Part shown: positions 27,966 to 58,114 of the stretch, piece after piece | Position numbering within the stretch: position 1 is the stretch's first letter | How the letters are laid out: every line of letters starts with the position of its first letter | Assembly (NCBI GenBank): GCA_977017575.1 | Contig: CDRNVI010000187.1 | Coordinates: forward strand, 49,704-113,703 | Source of the DNA: Paramoeba atlantica | Lineage: Eukaryota > Protista > Discosea | Direction of reading: 5' to 3' | Length of the DNA: 64,000 nucleotides | Program-made: the position numbers and the translations under genes | Notes under the pieces: model-generated | Told to the model about the DNA's origin: nothing | What the model saw: only the letters and a program-made list of their open reading frames with translations | Database searches by the model: none

Positions 27966-28039
27966 CTTGCTTTGAAACCACCAAGAAATAAGAGCACTCT
28001 TATTTTTTAATGGACTGAGATTTTTTTGTGCTTTGGTTT

Positions 28040-28070
<31 letters not shown>

Positions 28071-28175
28071 CTTTTATTTTTTCTCTTCTTTTTCTTTTTT
28101 TTTCTCTCTTTTATTCTTTTTTGTCTCTTGCTCCTCCAATCCTTTTTTTTTTTCTCTTTTCCCTCTTTCTTTCTT

Positions 28176-28231
<56 letters not shown>

Positions 28232-28906: not shown

Positions 28907-29149
28907 ATGCACATCAGAAGGGAGAATAATCCAAAGCTCCTTCCAAGGGAATTTATCCTCAACTTTTTAGCAGACAGGGCTGAGATGTAACCTGTTCCGA
29001 TTTTCACACTTCTTCAAGAGCTCCTCACTCCAATCAAATCACTCTACAGCACCAGAAAAATTTTCCATAATATCGAAAAACTGAAATTTGAACTCGCCCC
29101 CCCGGGGTTGGACATAGTCGAATTTACGACTAAACTACGGGCACCAACC
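28907..29149 (+). repeat. 243-bp dispersed repeat, less-mutated copy (partner at 19393-19635)
   Basis: Retains 7 CpGs, of which only 1 survives in the partner copy; open frame TLLQELLTPIKSLYSTRKIFHNIEKLKFELAPPGLDIVEFTTKLRAPT. Confidence 0.93.
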
Positions 29150-29849
29150 AAAACCATTAACCCTTTCTTTTATCAACACCAACTATTGCACAAGTCTCCG
29201 GACTTATGGAGAGTTGACCTCCTCCCTTCAGCAGTGGTATGGTGCCCCTCTGTCTGTGTAAAGATGGCAAGAAGATGAAAAATCTGGAAATTGAAACACT
29301 AGGGTTTAGAGTTGTTATTTGGTTGTTGTTGGTTGTGTTGTTGCCTCTTTATGCTTGGTGAATCAGCAAACACTTTTATTTTTTCTTGGAAGAGGAGGGG
29401 ATGTCTCTTTAAAGTTTTTAGGGTTTAGACTTCAATTTTCAGTGTGCCAGTAAACTACTTCTTAAATCTTTTTTTTTTGTTTTAAGAACTCTGCCAACAT
29501 AGCGGTAGAGTTCTCTTTTGTTTTTTTTCTTCTCTAAACCCACAAATATTCTAACAAAAAAAAAATAAAAAAATTCTCAAAAATTCTTAAAAAAATTTTC
29601 AAAAAATTCTCAAAAAAAAACAAAAAAAAATTCTCACAAAAAAAAAAATAAAAAAAAGCAAAGTTCCTACCCCCTCCCATTTTTCAGACACAAAAATCTC
29701 TCTTTTGAAGACACTTTTTTTTGTTTTTTTTTGAGAATTTTTTGTTTTTTTTTTTGTTTTTTTTTGTTTTTTTTTTTATTTTTTTTTTTTTTTTTTGAAT
29801 TCTCCACAAAGAGAAATATTGAACAAATTTTTTGTGTTAGTTTCTTTCC

Positions 29850-30977
29850 ATGTCCCATAAAGTCCTTTTTCCTTCTCTTTGTCAAAAAGACTGCCGAACA
29901 TACTGGTGTTTACAAAAAAGAGAAGAAAGAGAAGCAAAAAAGCGAAAAGTACAAACGACAAATGAGAACAATTTTTACTTAACAGCATTTCAATGCAACC
30001 CCCCTTCCTCTTCTTTACCACCTTTGAGAAAGGAGGAGGAGAAGTTTACGATATTACCACCTTTTTCAGTTTCTATTCCAAAGCCTTTCAAAAATTATTA
30101 TTTTTCCTCCTCCATTCTCAGCAACAGCAGCAGAAGCAGCCTTTTAAACCCTCTCAACAAACCTAGAAAAGAACACAAAATTCTTCCCTTTTTTTCACTT
30201 CATGAATATTATATCTTTACGAATACAAACCTTCCTCAACCACTTCTAACATTTCCACCAGTTCTTTCCCAATATTTGAGCATTTTCTTTTTCTTTTTGA
30301 AAAATTCTTGTCATTTTTCACAAAAACAAACTTCAAAAAATTTTGATTTTAAAGGAACAATTATGATTGGGTATACTGTTAATGCAATTGAGGCAACAGG
30401 TTTTTTCTTTAATTTTTTTTTCTTTAATTTTTTATCTTTTTTTTCTTTGTTTTTTTTGTTTATCTTTTTTCTCTAACCTTATTTTTGTTTCTTTTTTGTC
30501 TGTTCGTCTTATACCCTAACCCACTCCCTTTAATTGTTTTCCTCTAATTTTGGATTAGGTTTTGAAAAACTCTACAATTTTGTCTGCCATTTTGGAGTTG
30601 CTAATAATCCATTTGAACGAAAAATTCCCCAATGGAAAAAACAATTATGGCTTCAAGGGAAATACCTATATTCTCTTCTCGATGATTGCTTCGCTTCTGG
30701 GAAATTTGTAATCTATGTTTCTTTAATGACATCAAATGACCAATCAGTCAAATGGTACTCTAATGAATGCGATATTACATTTCAAATTGTTATTTTTTTA
30801 GGAACGTTTGTTGGTGAGAGTTTTTTTGAATTTAAAGACCCAACAGAAGTATATACAATTCGAATTCCAATTATTTCAGGAACAATAATTGTTTTTGACA
30901 GACATTTGCGACATTGAAAAATTGTAATGGAAAGTTTTCATGGGGAACAATACACTGTTATTTTTTTTAAAAATTAG
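29850..30977 (+). pseudogene. Two-exon gene remnant with a C-terminal 2OG-Fe(II) dioxygenase-like domain
   Basis: ORF 29850-30399 joins ORF 30559-30977 through a phase-1 GT-AG intron with a CCCTAAC branch site. C-terminus KWYSNECDITFQIVIFLGTFVG...IIVFDRHLRH*KIV...GEQYTVIFF resembles HxD...LGxFxGG...FDG..H...GxRYxVxF; one in-frame TGA at 30915. Confidence 0.55.
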
Positions 30978-31046
30978 GGTTTAGGCTGTAGTTTTTTTTG
31001 TTTATTTGTTTAAATTTGTTTTTTGAAGCAAATAAAAAAATTTAAA

Positions 31047-31090
<44 letters not shown>

Positions 31091-34000
31091 AATTTATTTT
31101 AATTGTAAACAAAGAAGAAAAAGAAAGATAAAACATTTTGAATGTCTTTAAAGAGGAGCACTTAGAGACTTTACTTTTTAAAGTACAGAGTTTTGCTGAA
31201 TAGATCTCATGTTTCTCACCATGCTATCAATGAGTACAACAGAAAGTCATCACTATGTATATTATAAGAAAGTTCAATAAAAATCTTGATCTAATATCAT
31301 ACCTTTCTGCAAAACCTCAGAAGCAATGCACTTCAGAAAGCTTGTTACATTTGGTGAAACTGTACTGTCTAATGAAGTTAACATAAAAAGAAAGAAAACT
31401 TCTTTTTTTAAAGAGTTGAACAATTTAATTTCTTTAAAGATCCTCACTTCTTCAGGGGTATTGTTATCTCTTCTTGCATTCAACATTTTGATGTGTAGGT
31501 GTTTTGGTAGATATTCATTCAGCTTTCAGATTCTCATTATGTGTGAAATTGCAAGTAAATTTCTGGGGTTGCACATATTTGATATGCCTATTGCCATACC
31601 TTGAAACCTAGATATTGCATTTCTGCCTTGAACTGAAGTGACTATAGCATCTAAACACAAGTGTCTCCCACCTTACCAATGTTTGAAAGTTAAATTTGAC
31701 TTCTTGTTGCAATAACCAATAGAAGGAAAATGGCCATCTAGAACCACATCAAATTGTACAAGTTTGGAGATTTGGAGAAGCTGTTTTACAAAATGATGAT
31801 GCCTATCATTCATACCTTGGTTGTATTTTACACAGTCAGAGAGGTGGAGGGAACTTGACATAAGTTTGGAGCAGGCCTTGCAAGTAACAGTGCTTTGACT
31901 TGAGAGAGACAAAAGAGTGGGATCTGTAATATCAAAACAGCACCAATAAGCAAAGCAATACTCCTCAGCATTCAAAAAATCTGATCTATTGTAGTGAGTA
32001 TCTTCTCCCTTAGAATTTGGATAGACTGTTATCCACACATGAGAAATTGAGCCAGCTTCATTCTCTCAGAGCACAGCTTGCAGTAGAATAAAGTTATTAT
32101 TTTGAATTATCTTTTTTCTGTTTTCTTGAAACTGATAGCTAGTGAGCTTCTTTTGATACTTGAGAGCTGCTGAGTAGTTGGATTCTAGGGGTAGATTGGT
32201 GAGCCTAGTGAGGAGTTGGTAAAAGGATAGGTTTTTTGTTTCTGCAATCTTCCACTCAATGTTAAGTTTGGCTTTAAACTTAACATATACATTGGAAATT
32301 GCTTGTTTCTCAAGGAAATCATTTTTTTTTTTTAATGAAAGAGATTTTTATTCAAAATAGATGGTTGTAAGAGAAAGAAATAGAAAGAAAAAAAGAGAGA
32401 AAAAAAGAAAAAGAAAAAGAAAAAAAGAGAAGAAAAGAGAGAAAAGAAAAAGAAAAAGAGAATAGAAGAGAGAAAAAAAAAGAAAAAAAAAGAAAAAAAA
32501 TTAAATTGTTACCTTCTTTGGAATGAAGAGGAGTATTGTGTATTGTGCACAGAATTATTGAAATAAAAACTGAATCTTTTTGAAGATTAAAAAGATATTT
32601 CACAAATCCTAGGAATAAAATGAAAAAGAGAATTTAAGTGAAAAAAAAAGAAAAAGAAAGAAAGAAAAGAAAGGGAGAAAGAGAGAGTATTGGAGAGAAA
32701 AAGGAGAAGAAAAGAAAAAAAAAGAGAAAAAAAGAGAAAGAAAAAGAAAAAAAGAAAAAAGAAAAAAAAGAAAAGAAAGAAAAACCAATAATCAATTAAT
32801 GTGAAGAGAACACACACATACACAGAGAGAGAGAGAGAGAAAAAGAGCATCAAATTTAAGGTGAGTAGGGAAGGATTAATGATTCACTTAAATAAAAAGT
32901 ATTTAAAAAAAAAAAGAAAAAAGAAAAAAAAAAAAAAAGAAGAGAAAGAAAAAAAAAACCTTTCTATATTATTGTCTTTTTTGTGTTCAAGAAAGTTGAA
33001 AAAGAAAAAACTCACAAAAATACCATATTATCATATTCAATGAAAGTAAATTAAAAAGGAAAAAAAAAAAAAAAGAAAAGAAAAGAAGAAAAGAAAAAAA
33101 GAAGAAAAAAGAAGAAAAAAGAAGAAAGAAGAAAGAGAAAAAGAGAAAAAAGAAAGAGAAAGAGAGAAAGAGAAAGATGAGAGAAAGAAAAGACCTTCAT
33201 AAATATTGCATTTCAGAACTATAAGCACATTCATACTTTTTGCACTAAAAAAAAATTAATTTCCAAATTCAAATCTAAGAAAGAGAAAGAGAGAAAAAGA
33301 AGAAAGAAAGAAAAAGAGAAGAGAGAGAGAAAGAGAGAAAGAGAGAGAAAAAAAAAAGAGAAAAGAAAAAGAAAAAAAAAAGAGAGAAGGAGGAAAAGAG
33401 AAGAGAGAAAGAAAGAGAGAGGAAGAAGAAAGAGAGAAAGAAAGAGAAAGTTAAAAAAAACCTTGTTGTAATACTATGATGATATCTTTTTCCTCTGATT
33501 TTATTAATCAGAATCTATTTTATTTTTTTATTATTGACTGAAAGAAAAAGAGAATAAGAAAAGAAAAAAGAAGAGAAGAGAAAAGAGAGAAGAAAAGAAA
33601 AGAAAAGAGAAGAGAGAGAGAAAAAAAAGAGCAAGAAAGAGAGAAGAGAATAAAAAAAGAACAGAAAAAGAGAAGAGAGAAAAGAACTATTGCTTTTTTA
33701 ACTTGAAAAGACCAATTCTTATGCTTCAAAACAGAAGATAAGGGTTTAGGGTGGTTCATACACATTCTAAAAGAAAATTATTATTATTATTTATTATTTT
33801 AAAGAGAAAAGAAAGAGAGGAGAGAGAGGGGAGAGAGGGGAGAGGGGAGAGGGAGAGAGGGAGAGAGGAGAAAGAGGAGGAAGAAGAGAGAAAGAGGAGA
33901 GGAAGAAGAGAAAGAAAGAGAAAAAAAAAGAACTAAGAGAGTCACTTCTCCACCAAAAACAATTCCCACCTTAGTTAACATTCTCTTTGTTGCATATACA

Positions 34001-36823
34001 TCTGGAGAAAAAGAAAAGAGAGAGAAGAGATTAGGGGAGAGGAGAGAAAGGGAAAAAAAGAGAAAAGAGGATGAGAAAAATAATTCCTTGAGAAGAAAGA
34101 AAAGAGAAGAGAGAGAGAGAAGAGAAGAGAAGAGAAGAGAAGAGAGAGATAAGAAGAAAAAGAGAAGAGAAATAGAGAGAACAAAGAAGAGAAGAGAAGA
34201 GAAGAGGAAAGGAGAGACTTTGTAAACATTAATTAATTTTAATTCATTTGAGATTTGAACAACCCATATTTCCTCTGTACCATATAAGTCTAATAAAAAT
34301 GAAAGAGAAGAGAAAAAAGAGAAGAGAGAAAAAAGAAGAAAAAGAAAGAAAAGAGAAAATTTATTAATTTAAACATACACACTCAAGAAAATAAAAAATC
34401 AAGAGAGAGAAAGGAAGAGAAAAGAGAAAAAGAAAGAAGAAAGAAAAAGAAGAAAGAAGAAAGAAGAAAGAGAAAGAAGAAAAAAAAAGAAAAAAGAAAA
34501 AAGAGAAAGAGAGAGAGAAAGAGAAAAGACCTTCATAAATATTGCATTTCAGAATCATAAACACATTCATACTTCTTGCAAGAGACACCAAAAAAGATTG
34601 ATTTCCAAATTCAAATCTGAGAAAGAGAGAGGGAGAGAGAGAGAGAAAGAAGAATGAAAAAAAAAGAGAAGAAAGAGAGAAAGGGAGAAAGAGAGAGAAA
34701 GAAAAAGAAGAGAAAGAAGAAAAGAGAAAAGAGAGAAAAGAGAGAAGAGAGAAGAAGAAAAGAACTAAGATTATTTTTGGTAGAGAAAGAAAAAGAGAAA
34801 GAAAGAGAAAGAGAGAAGAGAGAGAGAAAAAAGAAAAAACCAAAAAAAAAGAGAACAAAAATAGAGTCCAATTTAAAAGTAAGGAGTAATGAATCAAACA
34901 AAAATTTAAAAAAAAAGAAATTGAAAGAAGAGAAAATAAAAAAAAATGAGAAAAAACCAAAGAAAACATTTTTCTTTTTGTTCAGTGGGACAAAAAATAT
35001 TAAAAAACAAAAATAAAAATAAAAAAAAAGGAAAGGAGAGGAGAAGAGAGGAGAGGAGAGGAGAGGAGAGGAGAGAAGAGGAGAGGAGAGGAGAGGAGAG
35101 GAGAGAAGAAAAAAAAAACAGAGAAAGAAAAGAGAGAAAAAAAACCTTTTAATTTTTCAGAAATATATTTTTCTCAGTTTTATGTGCATGAAAGAAAGAA
35201 AGAGAGAGAGAAAAAGAAAAATAAAAATAGAAAAAGAAAAAAAAGAAAAGAAAAAAACCTTTTCTCTATGGAGAGAAGAAAATTAAATTATTGAATCATT
35301 TCATCAGTTTCATTTTCTATTTTATCAAATAAAATATTTTAAAGAATGAAGAGTGGAAAGAGAAGAGAAGAGAAGAGAAAAGAAAGAGAGAGAGAGAGAG
35401 AGAAGAGAGAATGAAAAAAGAGAAAAGAACAAAGAATAAAGAAAGAAAATGAAAAGAAAAAAAAAAAGAAAAAGAAAAGAGAAAAGAGAAAAGAAGGGAA
35501 AGAGAGGGAAAGAGAAAAGAAAAGAGGAAAGAAGTGAGAAGACAAGAGAGAAAGAAGAGAAGAAAAGAGAGAAGAGAAGGAGAGAAGGAGAGAAGAGAAG
35601 AGAAGAGAAGAGAAAAAAAAGAGAAAAGAAAACCATTGCTTTTTTAACTTGAAAAGACCAATCCTTATGCTCCAAAACATAAGATAAGGGTTTTGAGTGG
35701 TTCATACACATTCTATAAGAAAATTATTATTATTTATTTATTATTTTAGAAAAAGAAGAGAGAGAAGAAAGAGGAAGAAGAGGAGAGAAAGAGGAGAAAG
35801 AAAGAGAAGAGGGGAAAAGAAAAAAAGAACCAAAAGAGTTATTTCTTAAAAAAAAACAATCCTCACCTCAGTTAACACTCCTTTTTGTTGCATACACATC
35901 TAAAGAAAAAAAAAAGAGAGAGAAAAGATTAGGGGGGAGAGGAGAGAAAGAGAAAAAAAGAGAAAAGAGGATGAAAAAAATAATTCCTTGAAGAGAATAA
36001 GAAGAGAAAAGAGAGAGAGAAGAGAGAGAGAGAAGAGAAGAGAAGAGAAAAGAAGAAAAAGAGAGGAGAAAGGGAGAAAGGAGAGGAGAGGAGAAGAGAA
36101 GGGAAGAGAAGAGAAGAGAAATCCTAGAAACATAACCCTTTTGATATTACCAGTAACATTTATTGATAAATAAGAACTTCTCTCATATGTGTATATATGC
36201 TTTCTAAGAAAGGAAGAAGAAGAAAAAGAGAAAAAAAGAAGAGAAAAGAAGAAAAAGGATATTTTAGTCAATCAAAAGGGAAGAAAAACAGAGAAAAAAA
36301 AAGAAAAAGAAAAAGAAAAAGAGGAGAAACTTTGGAAACAATTAATTTTAATTCATTTGAAATTTGAACCACCCAAAAATATTCCTCTGTACCAAAGAAG
36401 GTTAATTAATAAGAATGAAAAAGAATAGAGAGAAAAGAGAAAAGAGAAAAGAGAAGAAAAAGAAAGAGAAGAGAAAACTTATTCATTTAAACACACACAC
36501 ACTCAAGGAAATATATGTATTTTAGAGAGAAAGAGAGAGAGAGAGGAAAGAAAAAAAATTGAGAAAAACCTCAAAGGAGAGGAGGAGTGATGAAAAAAAG
36601 GAGGTGAACACTCTTGAATGTTCAATTAGAGAGGAAATTTCTTTTTTTTGTGTTTTCCTGTGTATTGAGAAGAAAGAAAATGAGAGGAGAAAGCAGAGAA
36701 AAGAAAAGAAAAAGAAAAGAGAGAGGAAGAAAGAGAAACCAGAAACAAGAACAGAAAATACATATCAATCAGTACAAAAAGAACTTTTAATTTTTGTTTG
36801 TTCTGTATTTTAAAAAGAAAGAA
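30974..36823. repeat. Subtelomeric segmental duplication, copy 1 (partner 48477-54591, same orientation)
   Basis: Shared start ATTAGGGTTTAGGCTGTAGTTTTTTTTGTTTATTTG and collinear unique islands through ...GAACTTTTAATTTTTGTTTGTTCT(G/A)TATTTT(A/G)AAAAGAAAGAA. Confidence 0.93.
31052..32300 (-). mobile_element. 3' part of a degenerate CRE-like (restriction-like endonuclease clade) non-LTR retrotransposon, copy 1
   Basis: Minus-strand frame ...LLQAVL*ENEAGSISHVWITVYP...FLNAEEYCFAYWCCFD...CKACSKLMSSSLHLSDC...NDRHHHFVKQL...LCLDAIVTSV...FLKCIASE: CCHC knuckle, RH and D-x-x-V pattern of RLE elements. AATAAA followed by a 30-nt poly(A) (T run 31052-31081). No RT domain found. Confidence 0.65.
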
Positions 36824-37898
36824 AATGAGAAAGAACAAAGAAAGAAGAAAAGAGGAGAGAAATTTGAGGGAGAGAAAACAGGGGAGAAAATAGAGAGAAA
36901 GAGAGAGAGAGAAACCAGAGAAAGAGGGAGGAGAGAAAGCAAAAAAGAAATTGGAGGAGAAATCAACAAGAAGAGAGCTCATTCAATGATGTTATTTGTT
37001 CTGTATTTTGAAAGAAAAAATAAGAAAAAAAAAAAGAGAAAAAAGAGAGAGAGAGAGAGAGGAAAAAAGAAAAAAATAATTCAAAAAATTGAACCTAAAA
37101 AAGAGTCATTAAACATCATTGTATTTTTCTTTCCACTTTACTGAAACAAAAAATATAATTTAATAAGAGAGAGAGGATGAGACAAGAAAAAAAAGAAAGG
37201 GAAAAGAAAGAGAGAAAAACCAGAAGAGAGGGTTTCAAGGGGGGAGAGGAGGAAAACAAACAACAAAAAATAAAAATCAGTGAAGAAATCAACAGCAAAG
37301 AAAACTCAGTGAGGAAATCAAAAACTAAATCAGCAGCAGCAGAAAATGAAACTAAAATAATAAAAATTGAAAGAAAAGGAAGGAAAAAGAAGTGTGGTTA
37401 GAAAAGAAAAACCAAAACTGAAAAATTTATTTTTCTTTTTATAAACTAAACTAACAAACAAACAACCAAATTGAAAAACTTGAAAACTTGAAAGAGAGAA
37501 AAGAGAAAGAAAAAGAGAGAAATAAAATAAAACCCTTTTCTGTGAATTAATTCATTTTAGAATTTGGTAAGAGAAGTTTTAAAACAAAAAAAGTGTTTTA
37601 AAGATAATTTTCTCCATTATGTAAAATTCATCTGAAAATATCAAAAGAAAAATGAGAACTCAGTGAGGGAGAGGAAAGAAAAAAATACAAAAAATGAAGT
37701 TTTAGGTTTGTTCTTTGTGAATTGTATTTTTTTTTGAGAAAAAAGAAAGGAAAAATAAAGAAAAAGAGAGAAAGAAAGAAAAAAAAAAACTAAAATAACA
37801 AAAATTAAAAGAGAAATTCCAAGAGAAATCAACACAAGAAAAATTGGTAGAATACAATTATTGTTCTGTGTTTTGTGTTTTGAGAAAAATGAAAAAAA

Positions 37899-37939
<41 letters not shown>

Positions 37940-40400
37940 ACTAAAAAATTGAGGGAGAAACTAAAGAAAGAAATCAAAAAAAAAGAAACTTGAAAAAAGA
38001 AAGAAGGTTGCAAAGTGGTGAAAAAGAGGACATGAAAAAAAATCACATTGTAGTGTTTTGACTGATGAAAAAAAGAACACACCCCCCCACACATGGTGTT
38101 GTGTGCATGCAACTTTGAACTTATTCTTTGTTCTGAGAAAAAAAAAAAGAAAATGAGAATAAAATAATAAAAAAAAAAGAGAAAAAAAAAAGAAAGAAAA
38201 GAAAGAAAGATAAACACACACACACCAGAGAGAGAAGAATCAGTAGAAGAATTGGCAGAAAAACATTGCAGAGGAATTGACAGAGAAAAAAGATGAACAA
38301 CTTGGCAGGGGAATTGGTGGAGAAATATTACAGAGAAACTGGTAAACAAATTGATAGAGGAACCAGCAGAGAAATAATTGGCAGAGAGATTGGGATTGAT
38401 GAAGGAATCAAAAAATCTTTTTATTTTTATTCAGTGGAACAAAATATCAAAAAAAGAGAAAGAGAAAGAGAAAGAGAAAGAGAAAGAGAAAAAGAAAGAG
38501 AAAGAGAAAAGAAAGAGAGAGAGAGAAAGAAACCAGAGAGAGGGAGCAAGCAAAGAAATATTGAAGAGGAATTCCAAAAGAAATCAACAGGAAAATATTG
38601 TGGAGAAATTAACAAGGGAAATTGGAAATAAATCAGAAGAGAGAGAAGAGAAGAGAGAAGTGAGGAAATATTTGTAACAAAAAAAAATAAAAAGAAAGAA
38701 AGAGAAAACCTTTTTTGAAATAATAAAAGAATTTGAGGTGACAGATCAATAGAACAAATAGTAAGTCCAAAAAAAAAAAGCGATTCATAGATACAGTAGT
38801 GTTATGTGTATGTGCAAAATATTGAATCTTTGTTCTTTGCTTTATGTTCTGAAAAAGAGAGAGAAGAGAAAGGGGAAAGGAAAAAAGAGAGAAAAGAAAA
38901 AGAGAATGGAAAGAGAGAAAAGAAGAAAAAAAAAAAAGAAAGGGAAAGGAAAGAATGAAAAATTAATGAAAGAATAAAAGTGAAAGAAAGATCAAGGATG
39001 GGATTGGGGGGGGGAGAGAAAAAAGAAAGAAATAAACAACACTCACTGTTGGAGTGGCAGTGAAAAAAAAAGGAATAAATAAAAAAGAACTAAAAAAAAA
39101 TCATGTTTTGTTGTTTTGGTAGCTAAAAAAAAATGTGATGTGTGAAAAGAAAAAAGAAAAGGAAAAAATAAAGAAAAAGAGGAGAGAAAGAAAACCAGAA
39201 AGAAAGCAAAGAAAGATTGCAGAGGAATTAACAGAAGAATCAATGGAGGAACCAGCAGAGAAAGAAACTCAATCTGGAGTAAAGAAAAAAGGTGAACAAA
39301 TCAGTGGAGAAATTGGCAGAGAAATATTGCAGAGAAATTGGTGAACAAATTGGCAGAGGAACCAGCAGAGAAATAATTGGCAGAGGGATTGGTGAAGAAA
39401 TTAGAAAATCTTTTTATTTCTGTTCAGTGGAACAAAATATCAGAGAAAGAGAAAGAAAAAGAGAAAGAGAGAGGGAGCAAGCAAAGAAATATTAAGAAAC
39501 AATCAGTCAAGATTTTAGTGAACAAATTGGCAAGGGAATTGATGGAGAAATATTGCAGAGAAATTAATAAAAGAAAGAAAGGAAAAAAGACAACCTCTTT
39601 AATAAAGAAAAAAAGAAAGAAAGGGAACCTGAAAAAAGGAAGAAAAAAACAAAAAATGAGTAACACACACTGTTGGAGTGGCAGTGAAAAAAAAAGGAAT
39701 AAATAAAAAAAAACTAAAAAAAATTGTGTTTTGTTGTTTTGGTGATTAAAAAAAAATGTGATGTGTGAAAAGAAAAGAAAAGGAAAAAATAAAGAGAGAG
39801 AAAGAGAGAAAGAAACCAAAGAGGAAGCAGAGAGATATTGCAGAGGAACTGGCAGAGGAATTGGCAGGTATCAGCAAAGAAAGAAAATCAGATCTGGAAA
39901 TAGAGGAATTGGTGGAGAAATATTGCAGAGAAATTGGTGAACAAATTGGTAGAAACATCAGCAGAGAAAATGATAGAGAAATTGGTGAAGAATTACAGTA
40001 GAAATATAAGAGGAGAAATCAATGGGGTAGGAAGGAGGGAAATGGAGGAAAAACCAAGGAAAAAACAGAAGAGAAAAACAAAAAAGAAATATCAGAAGAG
40101 AAAAGAAAGAAAACCCCAGAAAAAGAAAGTACATTTGAGGTGGACACATGTTGAAGTTGATTTTTGTTCTGTAAATTTTGAGAAAAAAGAAAAGGAGAAA
40201 AAAGAAAAAAAAAAAAAGAAAAAAGGAAAAAAAAAAGAGAGAAAGAATAAGAGAGAGAAAGAAAGACCAAAGAAGGTAAGGAGAAATCAGTGGGAAAATA
40301 TCTAGTAGGAAAATCAGTTGAGAAACCAGCTGAGAAATTGGGAAAAAAATCAGTGTGGAGAAACCAAAAAAGAAAACTTGGATTAAAAATTGGAGGACCA
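32350..40400 (-). pseudogene. Decayed multi-exon gene remnants (exon-like islands in GA-rich intron-like DNA), internally duplicated
   Basis: Complex 90-150-bp islands bounded by AG and GT on the minus strand (e.g. a 96-nt phase 1-1 exon at ~32512-32607), repeated at 33190/34530 and 33680/35630. Confidence 0.5.
38230..40000. repeat. Degenerate tandem repeat with a ~625-bp period
   Basis: CACTGTTGGAGTGGCAGTGAAAAAAAA(A)GGAATAAATAAAAAA at ~39044 and ~39669; AATTGG(C/T)...AGAAATATTGCAGAGAAATTGGTGAACAAATTGG motifs at ~38300, ~39310 and ~39905. Confidence 0.8.
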
Positions 40401-41138
40401 ATAAATATGAGAGGAAAAAACCTGAAGGAAAAAGCAGAGGAAAAATATTGAATTCATTTTTCTTTTTCATCTTCCTCTTCTTCTTGTATGTTGTGGTGTG
40501 ATGTAGTACAGAAGTTGTTGTTGTTGTTGTAGTATTGATTTGTTGGTGTGGTGTGATAATAATTTTCAAAAAAAGAGAGAAAAGAAAGAAAAAAAAAGAA
40601 AAAAAAAAGAAAAAGAAAGAAAAAGAAAGAAAAAGAAAGAAAAAGAAAGAAAAAGAAAGAAAAAGAAAGAAAAATAAAGAAAAATAAAAAAAAAGGAAAT
40701 TTATTTTTGAAAAAAATTAAAAAATGAAAATAAAAAAAAAACCAAAAAATGTTCAAATACACACGAAAAAATGAATAAAAGAGTTGAACACACACAAACA
40801 TCAATTAACAAAACTAATTTCATCCAAATTTTCTTTTTTTTGTGGGGAGGGTTCAGGGAGTTATTGATAAAATGTCTCTCTTCCATTTGTCAATCATAAG
40901 AACACATATAATAAATGTGTTGCTCTCCTCAAATATTTTTTTGTGCAAAACCTTTAAAATGAAACAAAAAATGAAAAAATCAGTGTTTGGGAAGATTCAT
41001 ATTGAGGTAATTATATGTTTTCAAGAAATAAACATAATATAGAAAAAAATAGTTTTTTTTTAAGAAAGATAAATAATAAAAGAAATTTAAAAAAAAAAAA
41101 AACCTCTTTGAAAGGGGTTCAAGAGAAGAAGAATTTTC

Positions 41139-41755
41139 TTATTCCTCTTCATCCTCCTCCTCTTCTTCTTCAATAATGTCATCATCATCATCATTGTCAT
41201 TCTCTTCTTCCTCCTTTTCTTCTTCAATAATATCATCATCATCATCACTGTTATTGTCTTCTTTTTCATTATTCTCATTGTCAAAATCATCATTATCTTC
41301 TTCATCTTTAAGGCAGCTTCCTTTTTGTTGAGAAAATCGTCGGGAAACTCCAGAGTTTAGTTGCCTCATTCTTTTTTGATTTTTTTCTTCACCATGATCA
41401 TTATTGTAGATTTCCCAAAAAACATTAACTTTATGATTCTAAACGGTTTCTGCAACAAATTGAATATATTTGCTCCCTTCTTTTTTTCACATAGTTTGAG
41501 ACTTTTGAACAGCATGAGTTGTTTTCATATGCCAGATTAATATTGATGTCAAATAAAGAGACAATGGCCCATTTTCACCTGGAATTGATTTCTCAAATTT
41601 TTGACTTGCGATGTAGAAATTGTTATAAAAGGATCAATCACTAAGTTGATAACCATTAGCAGTCAAAAAGAGACCAATAAAAGAGTCATCCCAAGATTGA
41701 AGTTCAGACTTGCAAGTGGAAGAGCAAAGAGTGGAATGCTGAAAAAAAAAGAAAA

Positions 41756-41786
<31 letters not shown>

Positions 41787-44700
41787 AGGGGAGAAGAAAA
41801 AGAGAAGAAAAAGAGAAAAAAAAGAGAAAAAAAGAGAATAATTAGTATGTTTTTATTTGTTGTTTTTGAATTAAAAGAAGGAAGAGAAAGAAAATCCACC
41901 TCTCCAGAAAAAAAAAAAAAGAAGAAAAAGAAGAAAAAAAAACAAAACAAAAAAAAATACTCTGCAAAGATATTTGAGAAAGCGAAGTTTCATCAAAAGA
42001 GGGCGAAGACATTCAATATAGTAATCAAAAACAAAAGAAAGGCAATTAGAATACTCTAAAACAGTATCCATAGGTCGAAGTGAAGTTTTTTCTGGAAAAA
42101 CACAAAAAATTCCCCAAAAAAATCCAACTTTTCAAAAATTCTCAATGGTGAGAGAGACAAAAACTTCTTTTCTAAGAAAGAAGAAGAAAAAAAAATAAGG
42201 AGAAATAGGAAAGAAAATGAGAAAATGAGAAAAGAGAAAAGAGAAAGAAAAGGAGAGAAAAAATAAAGGTTTTAATAAAATAAAAAAATAAAAAAAATCC
42301 ATTACTGAAAGAGATGGACTAAAAAGAAGAGAAGAGGAGATTAAGGAGGGGGAGAGAGGGAGAGAGAGAGGGATAGGGGGGAGAGGAGAGAAAGAGAAAA
42401 AAGAGAAAAGAGAGAGAGAAGGAAAAACAAAAAAAAATTATGTACCATGGACCTCCGATATTTCCAATACTCAATAACAAAATACAAAGTTGAAGATAAT
42501 TTTTGATCAGGTTTTTGCAAGTTGAATTAAATGAAATCTGTATTGTTCATTTCTTTCCATATTCAATTGGAAAAAGATTAAAAAATAAAATAAAAAGAGG
42601 AGGAAGAAGGGGGAATGATTAAAGATGGAAAATTAAAGAGAAAAAATAAGAGAAAAAAAGAAAAGAACTTTGAGCTTTTGAATTCGGGATTGAATTTCTG
42701 AGGTGAACTAAACATTAGCAGCCGCTATTTCTTCGTTCATTTCAGTTTGAAGTTTCTTTGCATTGGTTAATAATTGAAAAACCAATTGTTCACAATTTTT
42801 GATTGTTAAAGACTAACAGACAACACACACACACACACCAAAGAAAACAAAAAGAAAAGTAAAAAAATATTAATTTTTGATGAGAGAGAGTTTAAAATTA
42901 AAAAAAAGAAATAATTTACAACAAAAAAAAAAAGAGAAAAGAATTCAAAAGAAAAAATATATTAATGAATCAGAGAAAAGGAGAGAGAGAGAGAGAAAAA
43001 AGAAAAAACTTTGTTGTTTTGGAGTTGGGATTGGAATGACTTGGCTCCTCTCTTTCATTCAAGATCCTGAACAGATCTTCGAGGTCTTGATGCTCCAATA
43101 GAAAAGGATGTACCATAAATCATAGCATTACAATTTGAAAGAAACCATTGATTTGTTTTCCTTTTTCAGAAATATAGAAAATTAAATAAAAAAAATTGGG
43201 TTTAGAAAACATTTGAAACAAAAATTAAGAGAGAAGAGAGTTAAAGAGAAGAGAGAGAGAGAGAGAGAGAGGGAGAAGAAAGTTTGTTATATTTTTGTAA
43301 CAAAAAAAAAAAAAAATACCAAATCCAATTTGCCAGTCTTTGGAAAGTGAGCCCATAAGAGGAAATAGTTTTTTTCTTTAAAAACAATGACAGAGTCTTT
43401 AAGAAAAAGGCTAATAATTTCTTGGAACAAAATATTAACCACCCTAAACCCCCAATCACAAAATATGAGAGAGAGAGAGAGAGAGAGAAGAAAAAAATGA
43501 AATGAGAGGAAAAATGAAAGAAAAATGAAAAAAAAATGAAAAATAAAAAAAACAAAAACCACAAGAAGAAAGAGATATCTTCAACTTGTCAAAAATATGA
43601 ACAACAAAACGGAAATACTGCTGAATATGAGAAAGTGGCCCACTAACAACAAGGATAACTTAAGTAGGAATTTTTTGTTTTCTCTTTTTATAATTTTTTT
43701 TTTCAATTTCAAATAATTTGTTCGAAAAATATTTCTCAAAAATTTCAATAAGAAAAAGAGGAAAACCATGTTGGAAAAAAGACCAAAAGAGATCCTAAAC
43801 CACTGCCCACACAACCACAACACAACCACAACACAACCACAATACAACCACAATATACACACAAAAAAAAAAAACAATTAATCAATAAAAATAAAAAAGA
43901 AAAGAAAAGAGAGAGAGAGAGGAGAGGTTGGGTTTTTTGAGAGAACAAAACAAAGAAAAACAAACAGTTTCTTCTTGTGAAGGGAATTTTGATGGTTCAA
44001 ATCTGTGAGCCAACTGGTCAGATAAGTCAAAAGGAAATACAGGGCAGCATTGATCTTTAAAATCATTTGAATCTTGCATTTTCCTTATCCAAGGAGGATA
44101 ATTCCCATGAGGAAAGGCTTCTTTCGTTTTACTGTTTGCAAGACTGGCAAATCTAAAACCCAAAATAAATAAAATTAAACCAAGTTGGTTGGTAATAAAG
44201 AAAAAAAGAAAAAAAACAAAAAAAAAAAAAACATACTTTGCTCCATTGATTGGACAATTTGAAGAGCCTTCTTGAGACAAAGAAGGAACAAAATGACCCC
44301 ATTGTTGAAGAGAACATCCATAGTGTGATGGTGGTCCTCTTTCTTGATCAACATAAAATCCAAGAACCCAATATAAGATTTTCTTATCCTGTCGATGTTT
44401 CTTGGGATACTTTTTTATCCTCTCAGAATAAGATTCGATCGGAAATGAAACAGAAGAAGAAGGTTGTGGTTTTGGGTTTGAATTTAAATTTGCAGCAGTG
44501 GCAACATCAGGTATTGAATCAAAAATGGAGTTGTCATCATCACCATCAACCTCATCATCATTATCAGCAAAATCAAGATCAGAATTTTCCTTATCATCCA
44601 AATTAGAATCAGAATCAAAATCAAAATCATTACCCAAATCAGAATCATTGTCACTACTATGATAATAATCACTAGAGTCACCACTTTCATCATAACCATC

Positions 44701-46450
44701 TGACACAACCACAACATGCTCAGCAGCACTTTGATCAAAATAGGAATTATTAGAAGAAGAAGAAGAAGAAGTATCCACAGCAATACAAGAAGAAGGATTG
44801 TCACTACTCAAGTCCTCATCAGAAGAAGAAGCATCATCAGAGTCATCATTATCACTACAAAAAGAAGCATTCATCTTTTTCTTCCAATGATATTATTGTT
44901 GTTGCCCACCACCACCACCATTTTTACCATTTTGAACTTTCGGGAATGTTTCTAGAGAGTTGGATGGAGAGTAGAGAGAAGTTTTTGTAAGAAAAGAAAG
45001 ATTTCTTTTTTCAATATGGGTTTGGGGTTTGGGGTTTGGGGTTTTAAGAAGAGAATAAAAAAAAAAGAAAAACAAAAAGAATTCAAGAAGACAAAAAAAA
45101 TTTAAAAATAAATTAATGTTTAATAAAACAAAATTAAAAATAAAAAATTTAAAAAAACAAACTTTTTTTTTGCTTATCCTTAGAGGGAGGGAGAAATGAC
45201 AAAATAGTTGTGGGTTGCTTCAACTTTAAGAGATTTCACTTTTTCTTTTGAACAGGAGGAGAAAGTTCATCACATGAAGAAGAAGAGATATCAAGAGGAG
45301 CAACAGCAGCAGCAGTAACAGCAGCAGCAGTTCCACCATTTGTTGTTGTTGTTGTTGTCTGATGTGATTGTTGTCTGATGATTCTTTTTCGTTTGAAAGA
45401 AGCTTGCTGTTGGTATGCTATTATTGTTTGGAATGAGTGTGTGGTGGTGTGGGCGAAAGAAAGAAAGAAAAGAGAGAAAAAAGAAAAAAGAAAAGCAAAG
45501 AAAAGCAAAGAAACATTGAAAAAAAAAAATTGCAAAGAAAGAAAAAAAAAATTTCTGTTACCTTCTGGAGATTTGTCTGGTCATTGCCTTCTTCCTTGAT
45601 GAGCAGCTGCTGTTTTTGAAGAGGAGGAGGAGAAAGAAGGAGAACATCATGGTTGGTTCTCTTTGGCTGAACAAAAAAGTTTTCATGGTGGTGGTTGTGG
45701 TTTTTGAAACTGTGGTGGATGTATCAAAGAACTTTTGAAAGAATTTGGTGGTGGTGGTGGTGGTTGAGAAGTTTTGGATAGCAAAAAGGAGGGAATTGGA
45801 GATGAGGGGGGGGTCTGAGGTGAACCAAGGATTTGGTCTGCTGGATCTTGTTCCTCTTCCGTCATAAGATTGTCAACAACAGCAATAGTATCGAATGATG
45901 ATAGTTTAATAAAATCATTATTAAAACTTGATACACTCACAATTATGATGTCATCATCATCATCACTATCACTGCTGCTGCTGCTGCTGCTGCTGCAATT
46001 TTCATCACCATGGTCATTTCCATGTAATGAACCGGAGTTGTAAATGTCTTCTTCTTCCTTAAAAAAATGAAAAAAGAAAAAAAAAAGGATCATTAAAAAA
46101 AATAAAAGAAAAAAAATGAAATTTTTCTTTTTGTGGAAAAATATTGAAAAAAAACAAAATGAAAAGCAAAAGTATGGGGTGATGTGGGTGGGAATAAAAA
46201 ATGAAAATCTGAAAAAGGTGGGGAGAGGGCAAGGGTGGCAGTGGTGGTAATTGTGGTGGCAGTGGTGGTGAATAAAGTTGTGAGAGTTGTAGTTGTTGAG
46301 GAGGTAAATGAAGTGAAGCACAGTGTTGCAGTTGTTGTGGTGGTGGTGACAATTGTTGTTGAAGAGGTGGTTGTGATGGTTGTGGCAGTTGTTGTGGTTG
46401 TTGGGATGAAGAAAACCAAATTTCACTCAAAAGTGGTTTGATTCTCCGAT
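41139..46450 (-). pseudogene. Large multi-exon gene with acidic low-complexity regions and several in-frame stops; family unknown (DDE-transposase-like is speculative)
   Basis: 330-aa ORF at 43882-44874 with an internal intron (...CPINGAK|...|GFRFASLA...); further exons GKQINGFFQIVML*FMVHPF, SWDDSFIGLFLTANGYQLSD*SFYNNF and YIQFVAETV*NHKVNVFWEIY carry TGA/TAG stops one transition away from sense codons. Confidence 0.5.
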
Positions 46451-47899
46451 AAATTTCTTTGGTACTCTTTGAGTGAAAATAAACTTTAGAGAGAAAGGTA
46501 GTCAAAGGGTCAAGTTGTGGGATAGAAAAAAAGGAGTGAACAGCCAAAATTTCTTGAAAATTGGCTTGACATTTTTGTTGTGTGGTAAATTGTTTGTTAA
46601 GTTTGGAAAGTGAAAAAGAAGAAGAAGTATTATGTGAAATTAGGGTGGGGATTGTTGTTGTTGTATCAAGAACACCACTTAGAAAGAATTGAAAAAGCTT
46701 CGAAACAAAAAGAAAAGCCTAAAGATAGCTTTGTAATTCAGTGAAGGATGAACAACTATTTAAGTGATCAGAGTATTTATGAAGGTCATCATGATAATGA
46801 AAAGAAGGGGAAGAATGAAAAGTCTTTTTCAGTACGTTCCATGTTTTCTGGAAAGAAGGAAATGTGGCAGAGGTGGAGTTTTTCTTTTTCATATTTTTCC
46901 AAAATAATCAAAATTGCACGTAAACACACACAAAGAATTTGATTTCCTTTTTGGAAAATAAAAAAAAAATTGAGAAAAAGGAAGAAAATGAGGAAGGGAA
47001 AAAGAAGGTGGGGAGGGGGAGGAGGAGGGAAAGAAGAAAAAAAGAGGGGAAAAATGAAAAGAAAAAAAAAAAACAAAAAGAAGGCGAAAAGATAAAAGTT
47101 GTAAAAATAGCACCTTAAGAAGAGTGATTGAATATTCTTGAATTTGAATTTTTCAAACCCAAAAAATGTTGGACAAATTCCTTTCAACAGTGATTTTGAT
47201 CTTAGTTTCTGTCTGCCCAGACAGAAAAAAAAATAAAAGGTCTCAAATCTCTTTGAGAGAATTAGAAACCCCCAAGTTGCTTGTGTTACATCACCAAGCA
47301 AGACAAGAGTCTGTTTTCAAAAGAGAAGATAATATTCTCAGTCAAATACTTTTTTTGAGAGTAAAATAAAAACCAACTTGATCCGAAAAAAAGAACAATC
47401 TTGTGTGTATGGTGTCAGAGGTTAAGTGAGTCAGAGGTTAGGAGAGGGGTTGGATTAATCCACCATCTTGATGGGGTTTGAATTGATTCATTCGAAAAAA
47501 TGGAAATCTCCATTCTATCACAAAGAAAAATTACAAAAATACGAAACAAAAAGGTTTTCTTTTAAAATTATTGAGAGAAAATAAAAAAATGAAAGAACTT
47601 GATTTTCGTAAATATCAGAGAGAGAGAAAATAAATCAATTGACAAATCACAATAGGAATTGATGAATTGTATGTGTGTGTGGAGGAAAGATTCTTCTGTG
47701 TGAGTGTGTGTGGGTTTCTTTTTTTGCCAAAAAAAAAAAAAATAAAAAAAAAATTGACCAACTCGTGACATAATTTAACACTCTAAAAATGATATTATGT
47801 TGTTTTTTTTTTTGCCTTCATTTTGTGTGAATGATACCTTGTTTGCCTTCCAGCTTTTCTGAGAATTTTGTTGTTTTCTCTTTTTGTGAGTGGTTCTTA

Positions 47900-48480
47900 A
47901 AATTTTCGAAAAGGAAAAGATTTAATAAATTTGTGGAGATGTGAGGAAACTTCAGTTCTTCCAAGAAACTCCAAACAACCAATGGGATATTTATGAGAAG
48001 GGGGTTTGTTCAATGCTGAAAAAACCACCAATAAGAACCATCTGGTTTGAACTTCGCTCACTCCTTCCGGAATACTTCCATCATTTTGTCCTTGCCAAGG
48101 GGTGGGAGAAATACTCACAAGAAAATGTAAGCATGTGTTGTTGCATTATTGTTGAGTCTCTTTCTTCTCACAAATCATCTGGATTCTCCACCGAAAAGTG
48201 GATTATGAATCAAAAGAAGAAACTTGCTTGCTTGCTTGCTTTTCTTGTCCTCCTGATTGGCCACTTTACTACAAAATCAGATTTGATTTTGATTGGGATG
48301 TGATCAAGAAAGAATTCTTTGAAGAAGTTCCAAGGCAGAATGACAAGTGTGACCACAATCCTAAAATCACATCCCCTGTCTCTGTAAAACAGGAAGAGAA
48401 TGGAAAGAAAGATAAAAAGAAAGATGAGAAAGAAAAAGAGAAAAAGAAAAATAAGAAAGAGAAAGAGAAAGATGAATTAG
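47900..48480 (+). pseudogene. Degenerate ORF of unknown family truncated at the start of duplication copy 2
   Basis: Protein-like frame PSFCPCQGVGEILTRKCKHVLLHYC*VSFFSQIIWILHRKVDYESKEETCLLACFSCPPDWPLYYKIRFDFDW runs into TTAGGGTTTAGG at 48477. Confidence 0.3.
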
Positions 48481-48557
48481 GGTTTAGGCTGTAGTTTTTT
48501 TTGTTTATTTGTTTAAACTTGTTTTCTGAAGCAAATAAAAAAAAAAAATTTAAATTT

Positions 48558-48604
<47 letters not shown>

Positions 48605-51600
48605 TCTAATTTATTTTAATTGTAAACAAAGGAGAAAAAGAAAGATAAAACATTTTGAATATCTTTAAAGAGGAGCACTTAGAGACTTTACTCTTTAAAG
48701 TACAGAGTTTGCTATGGCAGATTGTTAAAAGAGAGAGAAGAAGAAGAAATATGAAAACCTTGTTGAATAGATCTCATATTTCTCACCATGTTGCCAATGA
48801 GTACAACAGAGAGTCATTGTTGTGTAAATTGCAAGAAGGCTCAATAGAAATCTTGATTTAATATCATACCTTCCTGTAAAACCTTAGAGGCAATGCACTT
48901 CAGAAAGCTTATTATATCTGATGAAACTGCACTGCCTAATAAAGTTAATATAAAAAGAAAGAGAACTTCCACACTTGAAAAGATGAACAATTTAATTTCT
49001 TTAAAGGTCCTCACTTCTTCAAAGATGTTGTTATCTTTTTTTGCATTCAACATTTTTATGTATAAGTGTTTTGATAGATATTCATTCAGCTTTCAGATTC
49101 TCATTATATATGGAATTGCAAGTGAATTCCTAAGGTTGCACATATTTGATGTGTTTGTTGTCATACCTTGAAACTTAAATATTGCATTTTTACCTTGGAC
49201 TGAAGTGACTATAGCATTCAAACACAAGTGTCTCCCACCTTGCCAATGTTTGAAAGTTAAGTTTAGCTTCTTATTGCAATGACCAATGAAAGGGAAATGA
49301 TCTAGAACTATATTAAATTATGCAAGTTTGGATATTTAGAGAAGTTGTTTCACAAAATGATAATGTCTGTCATTCATACCTTGGTTGTATTTCACATAGT
49401 CAAAGAGGTAGAAGGAACTTGGCACAAGTTTGGAGCAGGCCTTGCAAGTGACAGTGCCTTGACTTGAGAGAAACAAGAAGGTGGGATCTGTGATGTTAAA
49501 GCAGCACCAATAAGCAAAGCAATACTCCTCAGCATCCAAAAAATCTAGTCTATTGTAGTGAATATCTTCTCCCTCAGAATTTGGGTCAGCTATCATCTAC
49601 ACATGAGAAATTGGGCCAGCTTCATTCTCTCAGAGCACAGCTTGCAGTAGAATAAAGTTATTATTTTGAATTATCTTTTTTCTGTTTTCTTGAAACTGAT
49701 AGCTAGTGAGCTTCTTTTGATACTTGAGAGCTGCTAAATAGTTGGATTCTAGGAATAGATTGGTGAGCCTAGTGAGGAGTTGGTGAAAGGATAGGTTTTT
49801 TGTTTCTACAATCTTCCACTCAGTGTTAAGTTTGGTTTTAAACTTAACATATACATTGGAGATTGCTTGTTTCTCAAGGAAATCATTTTTTTTTTTTCAA
49901 TAAAAGAGATTTTTATTTAAAATAGATGATTGTAAGAGAAAGGAATAGAAAGAAAAAAAGAGAGAAAAAGAGAAAGAGAAAAAGAGAAAAAGAGAAGAAA
50001 AGAGAGAAGAGAAAAAGAAAGAGAGGATAGAAGAGAGAAAGAAAAAGAAAAAAAAAGAAAAAGAATTAAATTGTTACCTCCTTTGGAATGAAGAGGAGTG
50101 TTGTGTATTGTGCACAGAATTATTGAAATGAAAACTGAATCTTTTTGAAGATTAGAAAGATATTTCACAAATCCTAGGAATAAAATGAAAAAGAGAATTT
50201 AAGTGAGAAAAAAAGAAAAAGAAAGAAAAAAAAGAAAGGGAAAAAGAGAGAGCATTGGAGAGAAAAAGGAGAAGAAAAGAAAAGAAGAGAGAAAAAAAGA
50301 GAAAGAAAAAGAAAAAAAGAAAAAAGAAAAAAAAGAAAAAAAAGAAAAACCAATAATCAATCAATGTGAAGAAAACACACACATACACAGAGAGAGAGAG
50401 AGAGAGAGAAAAAGAACATCAAATTCAAGGTGGGTAAGGAAGGATTAATGATTCACTTAAATAAAAAGTATTTAAAAAAAAAAAGAAAAAAGAAAAAAGA
50501 GAGGAGAGGGAGAGAGGGAGAGAGGAGAAAGAAGAGGAAGAGGAAAGGAAGAGAAGAAAGAAAGAGAGAAAAAAAGAACCAGAAGAGTCACTTCTCTACC
50601 AAAAACAATCCCCACCTTAGTTAACATTCTCTTTGTTACATACACATCTGGAGAAAAAGAAAAGAGAGAGAAGAGATTAGGGGAGAGGAGAGAAAGGGGA
50701 AAAAAGAGAAAAGAAGATGAGAAAAATAATTCCTTGAAAAGAAAGAAAAGAGAAGAGAGAGAGAGAAGAGAAAAGAAGAGAAGAGAAGAGAAAAGATAAG
50801 AAGAAAAAGAGAAGAGAAATAGAGAGAATAGAAAAGAGAAGAGAAGAGAAGAGGAGAGGAAAGACTTTGTAAATACTAAATAATTTTAATTCATTTGAGA
50901 TTTGAACAACCCATATTTCCTCTGTACCATATAAGTCTAATAAGAATGAAAGAGAAGAGAAAAAAGAGAAAAGAGAAAAAAGAAGAAAAAGAAAAAAAAG
51001 AGAAAATTTGTTAATTTAAACATACACACTCAAGAAAATAAAAAATCAAGAGAGGGAGAGAAAGAGAAAAGAGAAGAAAAAAGAAGAAAGAAGAAAGAAG
51101 AAAGAAGAAAAAAGAAAGAAGAAAGAGAAAGAAAAAAGAAAAAAGAGAAAGAGAGAGAGAAAGAGAAAAGACCTTCATAAATATTGCATTTCAGAATTAT
51201 AAACACATTCATACTTCTTGCAAGAGGCACCAAAAAAGATTGATTTCCAAATTCAAATCTGAGAGAGAGAGAGAGAAAGAAGAATAAAAGAAAAAGAGAA
51301 GAAAGAAAGAAAGGGAGAAAGAAAGAGAAAGAAAAAAGGGAGAAAAGAAAAAGAAAGAAAAAGAAAGAAAGAAAAGAAAGAAAAAAGAGAGAAGGAGGAA
51401 GAGGAGAAGAGGAAAGTGAGAGAAGAGAGAGAGAAGAGAGAAGAAGAGAGAGAAGAGAGAGAAGAGAAAGAAGAAAAGAGAAAAGAGAAAAAAGAGAGAG
51501 AAGAGAGAAGAAGAAAAGAACTAGGATTATTTTTGGTGAAGAAAGAGAAAGAAAAAGAAAGAGAAAGAGAGAAGAGAGAGAGAAAAAAGAAAAAACCAGA

Positions 51601-54944: not shown

Positions 54945-54956
54945 TTTAGTGTTTAC

Positions 54957-56757: not shown

Positions 56758-56763
56758 CAATTT

Positions 56764-58112: not shown

Positions 58113-58114
58113 TT

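Follow-up and report, generated by a model that had tools for sequence, protein, structure and literature searches.

How a chromosome arm comes to carry two large, similar blocks that each begin at a scrap of telomere repeat is the question raised by this locus of Paramoeba atlantica, which was analysed within a 64,000-nucleotide stretch (the window). The preliminary description had ascribed both blocks to a telomere-targeting, CRE-like non-LTR retrotransposon that attached to former chromosome ends. The arm is composed of the following features.

24289–30972, plus strand: R24-type subtelomeric sequence, the recipient end for block copy 1.
30973–30985, plus strand: telomere seed 1 (ATTAGGGTTTAGG), the proximal boundary of block copy 1.
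30973–48475, plus strand: block copy 1, 17.5 kb of a subtelomeric duplicon, ended by the next seed.
30986–31051, no strand assigned: spacer 1, 66 nt, AT-rich, kept in all eight block copies of the assembly.
31052–32321, minus strand: dead, 5'-truncated 3' fragment of family B, a non-LTR retrotransposon of the restriction-like-endonuclease (RLE) type, with poly(A)30 and AATAAA.
32322–32375, minus strand: 3' tail of retrotransposon family A, poly(A)12 plus about 42 nt, fused to the truncated 5' end of family B.
48476–48488, plus strand: telomere seed 2, the proximal boundary of block copy 2.
48476–54591, plus strand: block copy 2, 6.1 kb, ended by de novo telomere addition.
48489–48560, no strand assigned: spacer 2, 72 nt.
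48561–49885, minus strand: second copy of the dead fragment of family B, with poly(A)39 and in a more advanced state of decay than the first.
49886–49946, minus strand: second family A 3' tail.
54592–54949, plus strand: true terminal (TTTAGGG)n array, about 51 repeats.

The sequence TTAGGGTTTAGG is found exactly at 30974–30985 and 48477–48488, and the flanks upstream of the two blocks are mutually unrelated, as first described. Since the base before each occurrence is A, the shared unit starts at 30973 and 48476, i.e. at ATTAGGGTTTAGG. A seed 12-mer with at most one mismatch is expected by chance 0.26 times per window; the isolated seed form is present seven times genome-wide, each time at a block junction. 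Homology between the blocks (30972–36757 versus 48475–54437, extending to 54591) amounts to 85–94% identity, and both have the same internal order of seed, spacer, T-run and antisense end of a decayed ORF. The T-runs measure 30 nt (31052–31081) in copy 1 and 39 nt (48561–48599) in copy 2, with an antisense AATAAA about 12 nt from each. The conserved spacer and poly(A) reported earlier are present, the spacers being 66 and 72 nt long and not 75–85; this spacer is found nowhere else in the assembly beyond the eight block copies. In copy 1 the minus-strand ORF (32338–31276) keeps to one continuous frame and contains three internal stops, compared with five in copy 2. At the distal end of copy 2 the sequence switches to GGGTTTAGGG, while copy 1 runs on past the equivalent point. 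The true telomere at 54592–54949 lies on the same strand, so that the 3' end of the element faces the centromere in both copies, in agreement with the preliminary description. In this contig, the telomere abuts bacterial-looking DNA at 54950.

From profile and fold searches, the decayed ORF is identified as the C-terminal CCHC and RLE end of a non-LTR retrotransposon, which bears out its earlier assignment. The window ORF aligned to an RLE profile (A3, hhalign) with a probability of 100% and an E-value of 5e-42, and this profile in turn matched residues 906–1024 of 9nl2_A, in the CCHC/RLE region of the R2 protein (E 0.003). An AF2 model built on a 14-sequence alignment reached a pLDDT of 86.8 (a model from only six sequences, with a pLDDT of 35, was unusable); its best Foldseek matches were R2Tg, R2Pm and R2Bm, with a probability of 1.00 for these top three, and it also resembles Hjc resolvases. 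R2Bm is likewise the best PDB match of the family A reverse transcriptase (RT). The elements described here have in common with the R2 protein the C-terminal CCHC, RH(D/N), K-PD, D and K motifs and the fold, but the sequence identity is only 11–14%, they end in poly(A), and no rDNA target was seen. In the window copies the endonuclease motif is mutated: SN or LN stands in place of PD, and N in place of one D. Neither the pieces of the C-terminal ORF nor six further ORFs of the block had a Pfam match, and PDB searches with a single sequence or a shallow profile gave none either; a word-index protein search returned four matches, all unnamed, for which a cluster look-up gave no names, and the ESM Atlas returned generic RT clusters only.

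The first family B fragment aligns with residues 966–1360 of the 1403-aa RT protein P0006 and is 76% identical to the family B locus L010; its decayed ORF end still has the CCHC motif, with KKSN in place of K-PD, while in copy 2 the CCHC and PD..D residues have been destroyed by transitions. The hallmarks of target-primed insertion are present, with AATAAA followed by A30–39 and the 5' end of the ORF cut at 32321. The adjoining family A tail matches L047 839–895 with 89% identity, and the same 3' motif ends at least 20 dispersed copies of family A, which is a second RLE retrotransposon, active, with a genomic distribution that is dispersed and not telomeric. Both tails point their poly(A) towards the centromere, with purine-rich and other DNA beyond them. 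Nesting of family A into family B was considered but is not supported, no family B 5' remainder being found further right. Neither spacer nor seed accompanies a family B copy of 80% identity elsewhere in the genome; outside the eight block copies, the family has one further locus, represented on three contigs (L008–L010), which is seedless and also ends in decayed poly(A). An RT domain is present in relatives (L047, RVT_1, 1e-8; P0006) but was found in none of the eight block copies, nor in 195 kb of these subtelomeres, so that the block carries a fragment and not an element.

The eight junction copies of the assembly lie on at least seven chromosome ends, all of them subtelomeric, as anticipated in the preliminary description. 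The seven with an assembled telomere have one orientation and lie 2–47 kb from it; the eighth contig, C222, ends 8.6 kb distal of the junction without a telomere. The fusion of family B to family A, with its one 5' truncation point, is common to six of the eight, and all eight remain colinear distally through non-retroelement DNA, over distances between 1 kb and more than 20 kb. This common truncation point and distal colinearity indicate that the copies descend from one composite, and not from eight insertions. The unit has the properties of a subtelomeric duplicon: a multi-kb block (at least 20 kb long), present on several ends in a fixed orientation and colinear distal to a telomere-repeat boundary. 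Colinearity from the seed reaches block positions 921, 1130, 5528, ~5850, 8162, 17504 and 20893, and the distal end of a copy is a telomere, the start of T3 or R24 (see below), or another seed. Copy 1 is colinear with C200, C222, C231 and C183; in C200 and C222 the homologues are unbroken and run on past the position equivalent to 48475, and a rolling circle of the 17.5-kb unit was rejected on this ground. The eight copies have eight different flanks and are 88–97% identical to one another. The two window copies are 88.5% identical, copy 1 being closest to C183 (94.6%), and on their sequences they are evidently not sisters. Broken upstream flanks have unbroken homologues elsewhere, with an overlap of 0–2 nt, and the seed is 10–13 nt long in all eight copies.

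The seed is not confined to the block. The T3 family, which is unrelated, also starts with ATTAGGGTTTAGGG, and so do three of the seven real telomeres, those of C200, C231 and C183; AGGG begins the remaining real telomeres and also the seed in the block copy of C142. ATTAGGG, as in the seed, is a frequent start of real telomeres in this genome. T3 and block sequences diverge after the identical seed. The evidence speaks against reading seed plus spacer as read-through cDNA from the 5' region of telomerase RNA, because the spacer is present only in the eight copies and T3 continues differently. A third end family, R24, has a precise, seedless left end, with a CC microhomology in both informative cases; T3 was counted in 17 copies and R24 in 32 copies genome-wide, some of these loci having been read in detail. 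The R24-type flank of block copy 1 is broken at R24 position 6684, and R24 broken at 816, 1352 and 1971 adjoins the seed in C183, C222 and C200, respectively.

The blocks are copies of one composite subtelomeric duplicon, which was probably spread by end breakage, addition of a telomerase seed and copying from a donor. A chromosome end would break or erode, and telomerase would add one template-length seed to the broken end; the seed, or a few adjoining microhomology bases, would then pair with a donor end at its internal telomere tract, and DNA synthesis would copy the distal block of the donor, as in break-induced replication (BIR). Later breaks would be healed by telomerase or by another capture. 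In this arm, copy 1 would have been captured after a first break and copy 2 after a second, at block position 17504; a further break would then have received the telomere. Exposed telomere repeats have been described to invade interstitial telomere tracts by BIR, in a study that also takes identical tract lengths as an argument against transposition and only tracts of at most two repeats as stable (PMC7367193). The retrotransposon fragments are most likely passengers from a single ancestral event, which may itself have been the patching of a chromosome end by reverse transcriptase.

Several observations fit a BIR-like mechanism, which we infer from sequence, less comfortably. A long telomere as donor should leave variable tracts, yet the seeds are all 10–13 nt; under BIR, this uniformity requires either that recombination is restricted to nascent seeds or that tracts of greater length disappear. 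The 8 nt that C153 and C231 have in common immediately upstream of the seed are not predicted by pure telomerase seeding and count against it, as does, against a BIR-type explanation, the 3-nt filler at the C142 junction. The seedless, precise start of R24 and its CC microhomology are poorly explained by homology-driven copying, and the two retroelement tails, head to tail and poly(A)-first, look like reverse transcription onto a free end.

Under an RNA-templated origin, the block, T3 and R24 would be units with defined ends added to free ends by reverse transcription of RNA templates. We consider this unlikely. The activity would come from telomerase or from a template-jumping LINE RT, and the outcome would be a Drosophila-like or Terminon-like stack alongside telomerase. 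Three families have precise left and variable right ends, all in one orientation; short truncated pieces are serially stacked in C153, C174, C210, C159, C151 and C198; the CC microhomology is found at both informative R24 starts; the seed equals one telomerase-type start; and the two LINE tails lie poly(A)-first and head to tail, with the family B 5' remainder absent. Against this, a single RNA is unlikely to run through the internal poly(A) signals of blocks that are colinear over up to ~20 kb. The spacer lacks a source gene of its own, the block and T3 continue differently after the same seed, and R24 could be an insertion element of the usual kind whose copies were truncated afterwards by breaks. 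A doubtful but specific version holds that the amoeba ends are built by repeated templated addition of R24, T3 and block units, primed from broken 3' ends that pair over 0–2 nt with the fixed terminus of a template, via telomerase that runs on or jumps templates or an RLE-LINE enzyme acting in trans. If true, such addition would amount to a Drosophila-like retro-addition system beside normal telomerase, and the stacking of three families with precise starts is of wider interest only if it is RNA-templated.

The telomere-targeting RLE retrotransposon, by which every block start would have arisen through its own target-primed insertion on a former end, is very improbable. In its favour are the confirmed RLE identity, the centromere-facing poly(A), the subtelomeric position (8/8) and uniform orientation (7/7 with an assembled telomere) of the copies, and precedents among the telomeric RLE elements MoTeR, FoTeR and Cnl1 (PMC12857005). 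Against it, the poly(A) is 66–72 nt from the seed; the seed is shorter than two repeats, compared with 3–7 repeats at FoTeR 3' ends (PMC12857005); the other family B locus is seedless; and the related, active family A is dispersed. The reading is left unsupported because the element ends at its poly(A), no subtelomeric copy has RT, the same seed starts T3 and real telomeres, and six copies have one truncation point with kilobases of distal non-element DNA common to all; this shared composite largely refutes it. The arm was indeed extended twice from former ends, but attachment by the retroelement is not supported. Finally, chimeric joins in repeats almost certainly do not account for the junctions: although this contig joins telomere directly to bacterial-looking DNA and C170 and C181 are redundant contigs, the eight copies are non-identical with different flanks and differing truncation points, and several flanks match unbroken homologues to the base.

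Ordinary chromosome-end repair and copying, and not a new telomere-seeking retrotransposon, is thus most likely to have shaped this arm, which offers a base-level record of one protist chromosome arm broken and rebuilt twice. There, the copy boundary of a duplicon present on at least seven ends is marked by a short scar of telomere sequence; this is of use in annotating the subtelomeres of this genome and avoids a false call of a telomere-specific transposon.

Telomere-targeting retrotransposons include MoTeR, FoTeR and Cnl1, SART and TRAS, and HeT-A. In Drosophila HeT-A/TART arrays and in endonuclease-independent LINE-1 insertion at dysfunctional telomeres, poly(A)-first, 5'-truncated pieces stand head to tail with their 5' ends endward; here, by contrast, there is one ancestral two-fragment patch, telomerase repeats cap the end, and the whole composite spread later. 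The fungal MoTeR and FoTeR elements resemble the block in having an RLE-type non-LTR ORF with CCHC at chromosome ends, a 3' end directed centromere-ward and internal telomere tracts at boundaries, and exposed telomere repeats of MoTeR arrays have been documented to engage internal tracts by BIR (PMC7367193). They have intact RT-bearing copies, insertion directly in telomere repeats and telomere-like 5' ends (PMC12857005), whereas the amoeba has a dead 1.27-kb tail with poly(A), a spacer and a seed of less than two repeats, copied only within the larger block. Yeast Y' and similar duplicons spread by recombination or BIR (PMC13177704), a mechanism that for the present block is inferred only. 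The block differs from Y' in its nearly invariant tract of 10–13 nt, in having no intact gene like the Y' helicase and in carrying dead retrotransposon tails; it resembles Y' in the arrangement of multi-kb blocks on many ends, in one orientation, set off by short telomere tracts from the proximal DNA and from one another (PMC13177704).

Two subtelomeric block copies begin in the window at a short telomere-repeat tract, the seed: an exact TTAGGGTTTAGG, preceded each time by A, is present at 30974 and again at 48477. The flanks upstream of the two seeds are unrelated to each other. The terminal array lies on the same strand, and the seeds are therefore oriented toward the real chromosome end.

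Features of the window and related loci
24289–25640, subtelomeric repeat family R24, left end 24289; also at L021, L022–L024, and L034
66 nt (copy 1) and 72 nt (copy 2), spacer after the seed
31052–31081, T30 after the spacer of copy 1
48561–48599, T39 after the spacer of copy 2
54592–54949, same strand as the seeds, terminal (TTTAGGG)n array
L029:551–1645 (minus strand), L033 (contig C142), and L025 (contig C231), subtelomeric repeat family T3

In both copies, the T-run is followed by an antisense AATAAA and by the remains of a retrotransposon, family B, with a single minus-strand frame (32338 to 31276) that carries three internal stops in copy 1 and five in copy 2. A T12 at 32322, together with some 42 nt, makes up the 3′ tail of family A, a motif terminating at least 20 dispersed copies of that family; the block thus runs from the seed through the spacer, the family B tail, and the family A tail into purine-rich DNA. 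Homology between 30972–36757 and 48475–54437 extends to 54591. At 88.5% identity, the two window copies are not each other's sister; the nearest relative of copy 1 is that of C183 (94.6%). Differences run at about 10 transitions per transversion. Upstream, a 421-bp repeat (28728–29148), present in both orientations in C142, C153, C183, and C231, looks like a SINE-type retroposon because it begins with T16 and an antisense AATAAA. Downstream, the telomere array is joined directly, probably as an assembly chimera, to DNA (54950–64000) with a G+C content near 40% and closely packed ORFs of bacterial style, the first of which is a truncated 535-aa frame resembling polynucleotide phosphorylase by eye.

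The preliminary description took the block ORF for a restriction-like endonuclease (RLE) end, and the profile, the fold, and the alignment to RVT_1 proteins show this to be right. The A3 alignment of 14 sequences has invariant C, H, C, K-x-D, and D and near-invariant C, H (of RH), and K; its profile matches the CCHC/RLE region of an R2 protein with all motifs aligned (E 0.003), and the window ORF at E 5e-42, with KKSN replacing K-PD. An AF2 model (pLDDT 86.8) finds R2Tg, R2Pm, and R2Bm as best Foldseek matches, followed by Hjc-type nucleases. An exhaustive search returned proteins of about 1400 aa with a central RVT_1 and the window ORF's domain at the C terminus, residues 966–1360 of one of them aligning with the window ORF. 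A better-preserved relative lies at another locus, L010 (80% identity), and identity to the dispersed, abundant family A (at least 25 copies, 95–98% identical) is 40%. RVT_1 is recognized in the family A copy L047 (1e-8), for which Bombyx R2 is the best PDB match. Family A, at L047 (C170:64740–68465) and at least 25 other loci, dispersed rather than telomeric, has open frames of up to 1007 aa and a 3′ end of AATAAA and poly(A)26, and is a young, probably active RLE non-LTR family. C170 and C181 match at a constant offset (14,226–14,227 bases) and are therefore redundant assemblies, haplotig or overlap, of one region.

The junction motif occurs eight times in the 45.7-Mb assembly, with a different upstream flank each time. 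In agreement with the preliminary description's own check for further copies at chromosome ends, seven of the eight copies lie near one, 2.2–47 kb from a contig-end telomere and in identical orientation; the eighth contig, C222, stops before any telomere. The proposal that each copy is a separate retroelement insertion is nevertheless not supported. Family B ends at its poly(A): at L008–L010, the other locus of this family, the decayed T-run directly adjoins unrelated DNA, and spacer and seed are absent beside it. The family B/A junction is common to six block copies, and the copies are colinear through block positions 921, 1130, 5528, ~5850, 8162, 17504, and 20893. They stop where a telomere, a further seed, or a member of one of two other families begins. 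No RT sequence was found in 195 kb of block-bearing subtelomeres. Together with the divergence of the copies, these sequence comparisons show that all eight descend from one composite, spread as DNA or as a single very long unit.

The block seeds read ATTAGGGTTTAGG in seven copies and AGGGTTTAGG in C142, and the spacer is confined to the eight block copies in the assembly. At several junctions where an unbroken homologue of the flank is available, the break overlaps the seed by 0–2 nt. Telomeres of C200, C231, and C183 start with ATTAGGG joined to nonmatching ends, and those of the window (54592), C153, and C142 with (A)GGG. De novo telomeres begin in these two ways, which suggests that synthesis on the telomerase template starts by default at a set position; the ATTAGGG start occurs even where the end could pair otherwise, e.g. 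after CTTA or CTCT. We infer that the seeds are telomerase healing scars, which would also mark where copying of a donor's distal DNA began. Under this mechanism of scar and donor copying, an R24-type end would have broken at its position 6684, received the seed at 30973, and captured block copy 1; this copy would have broken at block position 17504, been seeded at 48476, and captured copy 2, which in turn would have broken near block position ~5850, with telomere addition at 54592. The second break would have severed the ORF now reading into the seed. This 98-aa ORF (48198–48494, plus strand), in a conserved segment (46799–48475), runs directly into seed 2; its coding region was seemingly cut there, because homologues in C200 and C222 extend beyond that point.

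Extension of the ends by RNA-templated addition is, in our judgment, improbable, with several observations in its favor that healing and donor copying accommodate less easily. Seeds measure 10–13 nt in all block copies, C153 and C231 share the 8 nt immediately upstream of the seed, and the C142 copy carries a 3-nt filler. The two LINE tails stand in head-to-tail order, each with its poly(A) first, and family B lacks the rest of its 5′ portion. R24 (32 copies genome-wide; 18 of 18 minus-strand copies in the first 65 kb of contigs) has a precise left end at CCCTATACATTGC, beyond which the flanks are unrelated; its right ends vary, its start lacks a telomere seed, and at both informative junctions (C153) it shares a CC microhomology of 2 nt with the sequence that was broken. 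T3, about 1.1 kb, 17 copies, and unrelated to the block, is frequently the last element before the telomere. Its three fully read copies all start with ATTAGGGTTTAGGG, and no two of them have the same flank. Several contigs carry series of short, truncated pieces of R24 and T3, stacked one after another. RNA templating would nevertheless have to explain colinearity across about 20 kb spanning internal poly(A) signals. In T3, the base after ATTAGGGTTTAGGG is T or C, and CTAATTAC comes next; the element can also occur in tandem (C218) or at an internal position (C142, where it directly succeeds a block copy truncated at 1.13 kb).

Healing followed by donor copying, the reading we prefer, draws on the anatomy of the sequence and on analogies elsewhere; it has a parallel in Magnaporthe, where internal telomere tracts are invaded by exposed telomere repeats via break-induced replication, transposition is disfavored by identical tract lengths, and stability is limited to tracts of ≤2 repeats (PMC7367193). 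Those are events of the same kind as proposed for the window seeds, and Y′ elements offer a second precedent (PMC13177704).
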